Source: Mytilus trossulus (lineage: Eukaryota). Taken from it: a DNA stretch of 64,000 nt. The notes below the pieces were generated by a model. It ran no database searches. It was not told the origin of the DNA and saw only the letters and a program-made list of their open reading frames with translations. Where the stretch lies: assembly GCF_036588685.1 (NCBI RefSeq), contig NC_086373.1:4774001-4838000 (forward strand). Reading direction: 5' to 3'. The position numbers and the translations under genes were made by a program. Numbering within the stretch: position 1 is the first letter of the stretch; each line of letters opens with the position of its first letter. This document shows, in pieces, positions 28,800 to 29,977 of the stretch.

Positions 28800-29977
28800 G
28801 TAGAAAATTTTCTGAACCTAAGTTTACACAACCTGTATATAAATATCTTAATGTAATATCTAAATAAATAGCTGAAATATCTGAAATATCAATGCCTGTA
28901 CATAAAGTAAGAAACTAAGTTTACATATAAATAACAATCAGTGCTCAGTAACTAAATGCATGTGTGTGACACCATTGGACTCACTACCAATGATATGCAA
29001 AAATCACTGACAGTGTGTAATTATCAAACTAACGCGGACCTCGACGAGAGCACCCTTAAACTTTCATGACAATCTAATTCAAACAGATCGACAAGAAAAT
29101 CTGTGTGCTTGTTCGACAAGTTTTAATCATTTGTTTCAAATAAATTGTACTTTTTGTTATATAAATGATACACGAAAATTTTCAGCAGGAATTTATCTTT
29201 CAGAATATGTCATAAGAATTAAACAAGATACCACGAGTGAAGAAATATTTACGATTAATGTACAACTTGTCAATTTCACTCGTGCGATTCTTCATCAGAA
29301 AACGTGTTGTATTATTTCACAAAAACTAGATTGTGCCGTAAAAATGATATAAATTTGTAGTAAAATCATTTCTTTATATGTTTTTGCTTTCAGATATACA
29401 CAGAAATAAAGAGACTTCCCAGAAATTTAGATTTTGCCTTCGATATGAAAGCACACAAAGATGGCAAACTTCGAAACCGGGACTTCCTTGACCGAGATGA
29501 AAGACGTTTCAAATATTCGAAGTTTTTACTGGAACTTTACAAACTATAATTATTATTTATTGTTTATTATTTGTTTTTGCTATAATGAATTTTTGCTAAT
29601 TAGAATCCTTTTAGAATAAAATATTAATCATATAAGCCCTGGTCAAAAAGAAAGAGGCGATTTCAAATGACGACAAATGGCGGATACCATATGATCACAG
29701 ACGACCTTTCAAAGACCTAATTTTAAAAAAATATATATAGTCACATGCATGTGGAAGGAGTGGAATTCTCAAGTGTATATAACTTGACGTGCATGTATTT
29801 CACTTAAAAATATTTCAACATGCAGATGGGTATTGAAAACTAAATAAATTTATGAATGATTTATTTTCTGTTTTCTTCATTGATAGCTAAATACATTGAA
29901 TATTACATCCAAATAAATTAGTAAAAAAAATATTGAACCATTATGTTTGGTAGGAATACAAAATTATACGTAAAAAA

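Follow-up and report, generated by a model that had tools for sequence, protein, structure and literature searches.

Site-specific LINEs are known from rRNA, snRNA, tRNA and spliced-leader genes, transposons, microsatellites and telomeres (PMC4640811); histone genes are not on that list, and our literature search found no paper describing a LINE that targets them. In R2 and R1, the target is one nucleotide of the tandemly repeated 28S rDNA, with the element in the same orientation as the host promoter. R2 is transcribed only as part of the host transcript, and R2-inserted rDNA units are usually inactive (PMC8789037). Host-derived bases at the R2 RNA 5′ end can help to form a precise 5′ junction. 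CRE-clade elements (SLACS, CZAR, CRE1/2) consistently insert at one position just downstream of the start of a tandem Pol II-transcribed gene, the trypanosomatid spliced-leader RNA gene (PMC12278014). SLACS RNA is reported to start at the SL gene's +1 and to carry its first 11 nt (Patrick et al. 2008). Drosophila I factor, in contrast, is not site-specific and relies on its internal promoter, and yeast Ty3 and Dictyostelium TRE5-A integrate at Pol III genes, within a few bp of a transcription start or at a fixed distance from a promoter.

Here, we analyzed a 64,000-nt stretch of the Mytilus trossulus genome (the window; GCF_036588685.1, NC_086373.1, positions 4,774,001 to 4,838,000), in which a LINE, termed LINE-A, interrupts the promoter of a histone H1 gene. 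A prior sequence-only reading had proposed that the LINE 5′ end lies directly behind the H1 initiator, such that the H1 promoter would transcribe the element almost exactly from its first nucleotide, giving histone-type expression in parallel with R2 co-transcription, while the downstream H1 ORF loses its upstream elements.

Anatomy of the interrupted H1 promoter

The window belongs to a tandem array of about 190 replication-dependent H1 units of 2342 bp. On the minus strand, the order is an H1-box-like motif, a GGTGCTCTC..GTCCGCGTT element, a TATA-like box, a 16-mer target, and the start of a 6.38-kb LINE, GTAGTGAGTCC. The features are as follows (all on the minus strand):

29101-29110, H1-box-like element AAGCACACAG, which aligns with GAAAACACAG-type H1 boxes of other animals' H1 promoters
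29031-29054, conserved H1 promoter element GGTGCTCTCGTCGAGGTCCGCGTT, containing GGTCCG (29040-29035)
29018-29025, TATA-like GATAATTA, with function inferred from spacing only, ending 22 nt (to 28996) or 27 nt (to 28991) upstream of the inferred LINE RNA 5′ ends
28988-29003, upstream copy of the target, TTTTTGCATATCATTG, within which 29003-28991 is the 13-bp target site duplication (TSD) and 28996-28988 (ATATCATTG) also forms the inferred 5′ end of the LINE RNA
28960-28997, conserved 5′-terminal block of about 37-40 nt (CATATCATTG + GTAGTGAGTCCAATGGTGTCACACAC), containing a CCAAT motif
22608-28987, LINE-A copy 1, 6380 bp as delimited in the sequence-only reading, with a 5′ UTR running to 28712, ORF1 in two frames (28711-28007 and 28013-27453), ORF2 at 27439-23606, and a 3′ UTR of about 1 kb
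22608-22627, (TAA)n 3′ tail of copy 1
22592-22607, downstream copy of the target, TTTTTGCATATCATTG
21947-22591, H1 leader (TCATTC at 22580-22575) and H1 ORF (22543-21947, 198 aa, KSKSL variant), separated from its upstream promoter elements by the LINE
21873-21918, histone 3′ stem-loop of the H1 gene
19942-20249, 5′-truncated older LINE-A copy (last ~0.31 kb, 90.4% identical to copy 1), between the H1 promoter and copy 2, with a regenerated target at 19942-19927
13558-19926, LINE-A copy 2, 99.5% identical to copy 1
10894-11200, second instance of the 5′-truncated copy, upstream of copy 3, 99.7% identical to that at 19942-20249
4252-10878, LINE-A copy 3, 98-99% identical to copy 1, with about 293 extra bp at 7638-7932

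The H1 gene has the features of a replication-dependent histone gene. In particular, its product matches Linker_histone (PF00538, E=3.4e-29), its 3′ stem-loop matches Rfam RF00032 with 33.6 bits, just under the gathering score of 34 (E=8e-7), and its promoter layout (H1 box, GTCCGCG element, TATA, TCATTC) recurs in H1 promoters of other animals; this recurrence and the repetition of the promoter in about 190 units indicate that the motif order is not due to chance. Specifically, a GTCCGCG motif is present upstream of H1 in 6 of the 12 metagenome H1 loci in which a start codon could be placed, and is aligned in our cross-species alignment.

LINE-A has the architecture of an I-like non-LTR retrotransposon. 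ORF2 contains an N-terminal APE endonuclease (Exo_endo_phos, residues 32-235, E=3.3e-13), an RT (RVT_1, 541-780, E=4.5e-35), and a C-terminal RNase H (RNase_H, 997-1124, E=5.8e-10). ORF1 scores 20.2 bits for zf-CCHC, below the cut-off of 20.8 (E=6e-4), and its translation shows three CX2CX4HX4C-like motifs. ORF1 is interrupted at codon 235 in copy 1 and is also interrupted in copy 2, but is open for 419 codons in several other copies, including several in the array. LINE-A copies have hallmarks of target-primed reverse transcription: TSDs of 9-13 bp, (TAA)3-8 tails, and 5′ truncations at LINE nt 5105 and near nt 6085-6091, among others. Pfam recognized no DNA-binding domain in ORF1 or at the ORF2 N-terminus, an exact-protein look-up found none of the H1, ORF1, or ORF2 sequences, a PDB search returned only generic L1 and R2 RTs, and the nearest database proteins are 51-57% identical and unnamed or called 'hypothetical'.

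The arrangement described in the sequence-only reading is thus real, but three of its details require correction. First, although GTAGTGAGTCC occurs three times in the window (28987, 19926, and 10878), only copy 1 directly abuts the promoter; for copies 2 and 3, a 0.31-kb 5′-truncated copy plus a regenerated target intervenes, and GATAATTA is about 335 nt upstream. Second, the three copies are not three separate insertions but one 9.05-kb super-unit duplicated in tandem, with flanks 99.8-100% identical and LINEs 98.5-99.5% identical (29950-30060 was left out of our local comparison, and the homologous spacer of other units was used only in this pairwise identity check). Third, the true TSD is 13 bp (TTTTTGCATATCA) rather than the 16-mer, and the element's RNA is inferred to include up to ATATCATTG.

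Repeated insertion at one nucleotide

LINE-A strongly prefers this exact point. The first-strand nick falls between 29004 and 29003 (between GTGA and TTTTTG), and the second cut falls 13 bp further on, after ATCA. All 11 in-array 3′ junctions have the form (TAA)n/TTT(T)..GCAT.., with 3-8 TAA repeats. Two different 5′-truncated insertions, one at LINE nt 5105 and one near nt 6085-6091, both have an upstream target copy ending TTTTTGCATATCA, and head-to-tail tandems are also present. In a tree of the last 1.8 kb, in-array copies form at least four lineages interleaved with off-array copies, and well-supported branches force at least four changes of location. Together, the full-length lineages, the two truncations, the tandems, and a junction without a TSD represent at least five distinct insertion events at the same nucleotide.

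The preference is not exclusive. Genome-wide, 8 of the 14 copies that keep the 5′ end are in the array, and full-length copies are enriched in the array (Fisher p=0.0005, or 0.004 with a conservative count of events). However, only 11 of 42 scored 3′ ends are in the array, and at least 31 lie elsewhere with no common target motif. Only four in-array copies, copy 1 and three others, directly abut the intact H1 upstream region.

The possibility that the juxtaposition has no function, with inserted units silenced as R2-bearing rDNA units usually are (PMC8789037) and the arrangement reflecting only target choice plus spread by unequal crossing-over within the array, is consistent with the tandem duplication in the window, with the interrupted ORF1s of copies 1 and 2, and with the identical 3′ 1.8 kb of the copies at 4.862, 4.869, and 5.069 Mb of contig C1. 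We consider this quite unlikely, given the five or more distinct insertion events, the in-array copies with an open 419-codon ORF1, and the off-array progeny carrying H1-derived 5′ bases (below), which show that promoter-proximal starts produced mobile RNA.

A sister family, family B, has two copies inserted at the homologous column of H1-promoter-like modules of a dispersed repeat, TE-X, which contain the same GTCCGCG element. Genome-wide, only six places have CGCGTT 25-50 nt upstream of TTGGTAGTGAGTCC: four H1 units and these two. The modules upstream of family-B copies L080 and L081 are not the LINE's own promoter monomers, since an uninterrupted TE-X copy continues past the junction, and L080 and L081 do not lie in diverged H1 genes, since tblastn finds no H1 coding sequence there. 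The 3′ junctions of the two family-B copies in TE-X were not found in the small stretches examined.

The 5′ end of LINE-A and its inferred start site

Copies elsewhere in the genome indicate that the mobile RNA does not start at GTAGTG, but inside the sequence that looks like a target duplication. Off-array copies carry 3-10 H1 bases, up to ATATCATTG, upstream of GTAGTG and beyond their own TSDs, and none carries more than about 10. In particular, the off-array copy on contig C11 has the TSD (T)GACAATACAC followed by ATATCATTG+GTAGTG, the copy at C1:18.29 Mb has the TSD TATATTTATCA followed by TTG+GTAGTG, and the in-array copy at C1:4.946 Mb joins GGTGA directly to TATCATTG+GTAGTG. The longest 5′ ends point to the A of GCATATC (28996; 9-10 nt upstream of GTAGTG) as well as to TCATTG (28991; about 4 nt upstream).

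These bases are native to H1. In the cross-species alignment, the Mytilus GCATATCATTGTAATCTGTC aligns with GCATATATTGTACTGTC (locus L096) and with the CATATAAAG TATA boxes of other animals' H1 promoters, and the alignment runs continuously across the insertion point. This rules out the reading that the H1 16-mer is a footprint left by a LINE, and indicates that an ancestor of LINE-A was transcribed from within the H1 promoter.

The same alignment argues against a simple hijack. The 16-mer is the homologue of the H1 TATA box, and the conserved H1 initiator is TCATTC, the second candidate of the sequence-only reading, which lies outside the duplication, 17 nt nearer the ATG than TCATTG; the resulting 35-nt leader is typical of the other H1 genes compared. 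The normal H1 start site may therefore be downstream of the insertion point. One possibility is that the H1 promoter fires into the LINE from this normal geometry, about 30 nt past the TATA-homologue CATATCATTG or at the distance of TCATTC, at LINE nt 14-25, giving translatable RNAs that lack the 5′ end and could not regenerate full-length copies. H1 and the LINE both have CACACAT about 27-33 nt past TATC, consistent with this possibility. However, no genomic copy starts at LINE nt 14-25: all 14 copies that keep the 5′ end align from nt 1 (GTAGTG), and most carry extra H1-like bases upstream. In addition, Mytilus lacks 6-10 nt between the TATA-homologue and TCATTC, such that the ancestral geometry is already broken. 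We consider this possibility unlikely.

A second possibility is that LINE-A has an autonomous internal promoter, with its first ~40 nt (initiator-like TCATTG, a CCAAT motif, and a CACACAC block) directing initiation at its own first base, as in Drosophila I factor or jockey, and the H1 site being only a preferred, tolerated landing place, to which the H1 promoter would add little or nothing. The first 40 nt are 37/40 identical between LINE-A and family B, with the sequence further on about 40% alignable, which suggests internal promoter determinants; family B keeps the same 5′ bases outside the H1 array; an off-array LINE-A copy about 99-100% identical to the in-array copies has an open ORF1 (C1:18.29 Mb); the tree contains one off-array-only clade; and the domain set and (TAA)n tail resemble I-type elements, which have internal promoters. 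However, the 9-10 terminal bases are native to H1, so at least the ancestor was started from H1 sequence; insertions place a TATA-like box 22-32 nt upstream of the 5′ end both in H1 and in TE-X module a; and in-array copies have short terminal branches, with each in-array lineage except the oldest (C1:4,763,475) having an off-array sister, as expected if array copies are the sources. This possibility is less likely, but is the strongest alternative.

We favor, with moderate confidence, a model in which the lineage acquired its 5′ end by being transcribed from a start site inside the H1 promoter. In this model, in a copy that abuts the promoter, such as copy 1, the H1 box, the GTCCGCG element, and the GATAATTA box lie at the right distance to start transcription at the element's natural 5′ end, and the most likely outcome is histone-type expression. 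The 5′ homology of the RNA to the target would let the cDNA end anneal to the cut target, which would explain why in-array insertions are seamless and mostly full-length. The downstream H1 gene keeps a copy of the TATA-homologue and the TCATTC initiator but loses all upstream elements. The motif order, the repeated use of one nucleotide, and the H1 origin of the terminal bases are shown by the sequence comparisons, whereas the start sites are inferred from genomic progeny, and present-day transcription of the element from the H1 promoter is inferred from sequence alone, none of the sequencing runs that contain the stretch being on record as RNA. The interpretation offered in the sequence-only reading is accordingly supported in part.

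A broader reading, which we regard as tentative and somewhat less likely than not, is that families A and B are specialized to land on the core promoter of replication-dependent H1 genes, and on H1-promoter-like modules copied into another repeat, by reading the GGTGCTCTC..GTCCGCG module or a factor bound to it. In this reading, the element cuts so that its 5′ end coincides with the transcription start, carries H1 TATA-region bases as its own 5′ end, and thereby borrows a histone promoter for S-phase-coupled expression. This would be the first site-specific LINE known for a Pol II protein-coding gene promoter.

A LINE that sits on a histone core promoter would be a natural case of a retroelement coupling its expression to S phase, and would show that retrotransposed copies can serve as a fossil record of a transcription start site. 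The finding further suggests target choice by promoter architecture rather than by the sequence at the cut, which is of interest for targeted gene insertion. For mussel genomics, it explains structural variation in the H1 array, which is used as a species marker.

Comparison with R2, SLACS, I factor, and Ty3

LINE-A resembles R2 and R1 in inserting at one nucleotide of a tandemly repeated host gene, in the orientation of the host promoter, and in occupying a minority of units (about 6% here). It differs in that the target is the core promoter of a Pol II protein-coding gene, not a Pol I transcript body; in that the endonuclease is of the APE type with RNase H, not the restriction-like type; in that many copies lie off target; and in that no HDV-like ribozyme was found, an Rfam scan of 21800-29400 at E<=1 returning only the histone stem-loop and two chance-level hits.

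The 11 nt reportedly carried by SLACS RNA would be the closest parallel to the 9-10 H1 bases observed here. However, CRE-clade elements use a restriction-like endonuclease, target an snRNA-type gene, and are strictly site-specific, whereas here the host is an mRNA gene promoter and the bases carried come from the TATA/initiator region.

With Drosophila I factor and other I-group LINEs, LINE-A shares an APE-RT-RNase H ORF2, a (TAA)n 3′ tail instead of poly(A), and a short conserved 5′-terminal block, which in I-group LINEs is a promoter block and in LINE-A is a putative one; I-group ORF1s have CCHC knuckles, and LINE-A ORF1 shows CCHC-like motifs. The resemblance is one of architecture, and I factor lacks the site preference seen here.

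With Ty3 and TRE5-A, LINE-A shares integration close to a transcription start, probably achieved by reading the promoter or its bound factors rather than the cut site itself; here the two cuts, at −8/−7 and +6/+7, bracket the inferred start at 28996. The Ty3 and TRE5-A targets, in contrast, are Pol III genes, and Ty3 is an LTR element with an integrase.

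The H1 array and a LINE in its proximal promoter

The window (positions 4,774,001-4,838,000 of sequence C1 in the 1.3-Gb assembly G000; other C numbers denote other sequences of this assembly) holds a tandem array of 2342-bp units, each with one minus-strand gene for a 198-aa linker histone (Pfam Linker_histone, E=3.4e-29), followed by a histone 3′ stem-loop (RF00032, 33.6 bits against a gathering score of 34, E=8e-7). The closest named proteins are H1 of Mytilus coruscus, M. galloprovincialis, M. edulis, and M. trossulus, and separate H1-only clusters are known in Mytilus (PMC13525598). 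About 190 copies of the target sequence exist, on both strands (51 forward, 139 reverse), and nearly all those listed lie between C1:4.77 and 5.06 Mb; these copy counts are approximate, since tandem arrays are prone to assembly error. Blocks of H1 units at C1:4.957-4.984 and 5.038-5.057 Mb lie in inverted orientation within the array, reflecting either real inversions or an assembly artefact. Variant units occur at the edge of the array: a 206-aa H1 in units about 96% identical (window 1206-1826 and 3568-4188, minus strand), and a more diverged unit (locus L050, the C1:4763475 region) whose target reads TTTGGCATAAAATTG yet carries a 3′ junction of LINE-A, the element described below, at the same position. 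Recurrent 106-aa and 129-aa ORFs lie opposite or beside each H1 gene (e.g., window 22002-22322 and 38645-39034, plus strand); the 129-aa ORF has no Pfam match, and both look like by-products of the lysine/alanine-rich coding strand and the promoter region.

The observation made in the sequence-only reading, that a LINE starts directly behind the putative H1 initiator, is confirmed with corrections. The reported order of elements is exact on the minus strand:

29110-29101 (minus), H1-box-like element AAGCACACAG
29054-29031 (minus), promoter element GGTGCTCTCGTCGAGGTCCGCGTT
29025-29018 (minus), TATA-like box GATAATTA
29003-28988 (minus), upstream copy of the 16-mer target, TTTTTGCATATCATTG
28987 onward (minus), start of the LINE, GTAGTGAGTCC
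22627-22608 (minus), (TAA)n tail of the LINE, followed by the same 16-mer

The element, here called LINE-A, encodes an ORF1 with CCHC-like knuckles and a 1277-aa ORF2 with APE, RT, and RNase H domains. Three copies start with GTAGTGAGTCC, at 28987, 19926, and 10878, but two corrections apply. First, copies 2 and 3 are preceded by a 0.31-kb 5′-truncated, 90%-identical older copy plus a regenerated target, so that the H1 promoter is about 335 nt further up. Second, the three copies belong to a 9.05-kb super-unit duplicated in tandem, in which spacer flanks are 99.8% identical, the 660 bp of H1 downstream of copies 1 and 2 are 100% identical, and the LINEs are 98.5-99.5% identical. Copy 3 has about 293 bp of extra sequence relative to copies 1 and 2 (window 7638-7932). 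The H1 ORFs downstream of copies 1 and 2 (window 21947-22543 and 12897-13493, minus strand) differ from the array majority by one residue (KSKSL against KSNSL), which provides a potential marker for expression of LINE-downstream H1 genes.

Two other insertions are present in the window. A second, unrelated LINE (31409-36403, minus strand; APE+RT ORF2 of 1161 aa, ORF1 of 296 aa) is inserted in the same orientation 125 nt upstream of the next H1 ATG, about 24 nt upstream of the GGTCCG motif named in the sequence-only reading and 10 nt upstream of the start of the GGTGCTCTC..GTCCGCG element as delimited here, raising the possibility that the H1 promoter is a general hot spot. A 2.9-kb insertion at 51294-54198, taken for a DNA transposon in the sequence-only reading, lies in the spacer of one H1 unit (unit position about 1560).

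Recurrent use of one insertion site and the inferred RNA 5′ end

Genome-wide, 14 copies keep the LINE-A 5′ end, and 8 of them are in the H1 array. Of 42 scored 3′ ends, 11 are in the array, and all 11 join (TAA)n to the same base of the H1 unit, with 3 to 8 TAA repeats. The events differ in structure: full-length copies with the 16-mer on both sides; a head-to-tail pair of full-length copies at C1:4,862,431-4,875,329; a copy truncated at LINE nt 5105; the 0.31-kb truncated copy; a copy whose upstream flank ends GGTGA and is joined straight to TATCATTG+GTAGTG; and a copy in a diverged unit whose 5′ side abuts H1 coding sequence. A maximum-likelihood tree of the last 1.8 kb puts the in-array copies in at least four lineages interleaved with off-array copies, and well-supported branches force at least 4 changes of location. 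Off-array 3′ flanks share no motif, indicating that the element prefers the site but is not restricted to it. Full-length copies are over-represented in the array (8 of 11 against 4 of 31, Fisher p=0.0005; p=0.004 with a conservative count of independent events).

Both truncated in-array insertions have an upstream target copy ending TTTTTGCATATCA, indicating that the real duplication is 13 bp rather than 16 bp, with the nick between 29004 and 29003 and the second cut between 28991 and 28990. The remaining TTG, and more, belongs to the element. Specifically, the copy at C11:19.85 Mb has the TSD (T)GACAATACAC followed by ATATCATTG+GTAGTG, the copy at C1:18.29 Mb has the TSD TATATTTATCA followed by TTG+GTAGTG, other copies show TCATTG, CTCATTG, ATTG, or TTG, and the C3 copy starts at GTAGTG after a TSD ending TTTG. 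The extents cluster at 9-10 nt and at 3-5 nt, no off-array copy carries more than about 10 H1 bases, and promoter-plus-LINE matches occur only in the array. The RNA that was copied therefore began at 28996 (the A of GCATATC, which fits a BBCABW-type initiator) and/or near 28991 (the A of TCATTG, the initiator proposed in the sequence-only reading), positions that are 22 and 27 nt past the end of GATAATTA. This is indirect but specific evidence that the start lies inside the sequence first taken for the target duplication.

H1 origin of the terminal bases and evidence on promoter use

To determine the origin of these bases, we scanned metagenome contigs with the H1 protein, which returned H1 genes of other animals (61-75% identity in the globular domain for the 12 loci examined; 67-75% for the five aligned). 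Their promoters share a layout comprising an H1 box (GAAAACACAG), CACCTG..CTCT.TCAC-GTCCGCGCG, about 36-40 nt of spacer, CATATAAAG or GCATATATTGTA, about 24 nt of spacer, (A)TCATTC, and 22-36 nt of leader before the ATG. In the JGI/ENA metagenome contigs L089, L090, L091, L093, and L096, the detailed order is H1 box, CACCTG, CTCT.TCAC-GTCCGCGCG, CTGACCTAC, CATATAAAG, then TCATTC, and the GTCCGCG element seems to be a widely conserved H1 promoter element. The Mytilus GCATATCATTGTAATCTGTC aligns with the TATA box and its 3′ flank. Compared with GCATATATTGTACTGTC of L096, the TATA-box part (GCATATCATTGTA against GCATATATTGTA) differs by one indel, and a second 2-nt indel follows it; the alignment runs continuously across the LINE insertion point. 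The 16-mer is therefore native H1 sequence and not a LINE footprint, and the LINE's terminal ATATCATTG must have come from H1, a 9-10-nt identity at a fixed junction having a chance of about 1e-6 to 4e-6. The simplest route is transcription of a resident copy from a start inside the H1 promoter, which amounts to an evolutionary record of promoter use.

Other observations weaken a simple promoter hijack. The same alignment places the conserved H1 initiator at the Mytilus TCATTC, the second candidate of the sequence-only reading, which lies outside the duplication and gives a 35-nt leader typical of the other H1 genes. Mytilus lacks 6-10 nt between the TATA-homologue and TCATTC, so that the ancestral geometry is broken, and the sequence alone leaves as candidates for the gene's present start site 28996/28991 (driven by GATAATTA), TCATTC, or about 30 nt past the TATA-homologue. 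LINE-A and a sister family, B (loci L075/L077 at C8:40853500-40862000 and L078-L084), are 70-75% identical in ORF2; they share 37 of their first 40 nt, including CATAyCATTG and a CCAAT motif, and then drop to about 40%, and such a block is what an internal core promoter looks like. Family B is not in the H1 array. The downstream H1 gene loses its upstream elements, as the sequence-only reading proposed, but not its core promoter: it keeps a copy of the TATA-homologue and TCATTC, preceded by the A/T-rich (TAA)n tail.

Two family-B copies are inserted in the RNase H coding region of another LINE, and two (C4:24.164 Mb and C8:19.527 Mb) lie in a dispersed repeat of about 9-19 kb, here called TE-X (e.g., loci L085, C1:56544700-56545500, and L086, C1:56547900-56548700). 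The repeat has about 387 hits of GGTGYTYTC..GTCCGCGTTC genome-wide, typically two in direct orientation 132 bp apart at one end and two inverted at the other. Its subterminal modules carry GGTGYTYTC..GTCCGCGTT and align with the H1 proximal promoter over about 65-70 nt, and TE-X may have captured H1 promoter modules. Both family-B 5′ junctions (..TTTGCA|ATTG+GTAGTG and ..TTTTCGA|TTG+GTAGTG) fall in the column homologous to H1's ..TTTTTGCA|TATCATTG. Genome-wide, CGCGTT lies 25-50 nt upstream of TTGGTAGTGAGTCC at only six places: four H1 units and these two. The lineage thus seems to recognise an H1-promoter-type module, or something bound to it, rather than the cut site. Pfam searches saw no DNA-binding domain in ORF1 or at the ORF2 N-terminus.

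Proposed mechanism and comparison with known systems

The interpretation that the H1 promoter would transcribe the element almost exactly from its first nucleotide is partly supported. The analysis establishes the position and orientation of the element, the 13-bp staggered cuts, the recurrent use of the site, the location of the 5′ end of the mobile RNA within H1-derived bases (as read indirectly from genomic copies), and the H1 origin of those bases. The remaining steps are inferred from sequence: that, in units where the element abuts the promoter, the H1 upstream elements and GATAATTA start transcription at the element's natural 5′ end; that the RNA's 6-9-nt homology to the cut target lets the cDNA end anneal, giving seamless and mostly full-length insertions; and that expression follows the histone (S-phase) pattern. 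There is no poly(A) signal within 180 nt of the tail, and 3′ ends may therefore form downstream, possibly at the H1 stem-loop, a point that is pure speculation. Several in-array copies and one off-array copy keep an open 419-codon ORF1, while window copies 1 and 2 are interrupted at codons 235 and 139.

Site-specific LINEs that use a host promoter are already known. Their known targets do not include histone genes (PMC4640811), and literature searches found no description of such a case; what is new here is that the preferred site lies in the H1 promoter. LINE-A is not strictly site-specific, and no R2-type ribozyme was detected at its 5′ end. In architecture it resembles I-type elements (APE, RT, RNase H, (TAA)n tail). 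The closest functional parallels are R2, which is transcribed only within pre-rRNA and whose inserted units are usually silent (PMC8789037), and the CRE-clade elements of spliced-leader genes, which sit at one position of a tandem Pol II gene (PMC12278014). The RNA of one such element, SLACS, reportedly carries the first SL bases.
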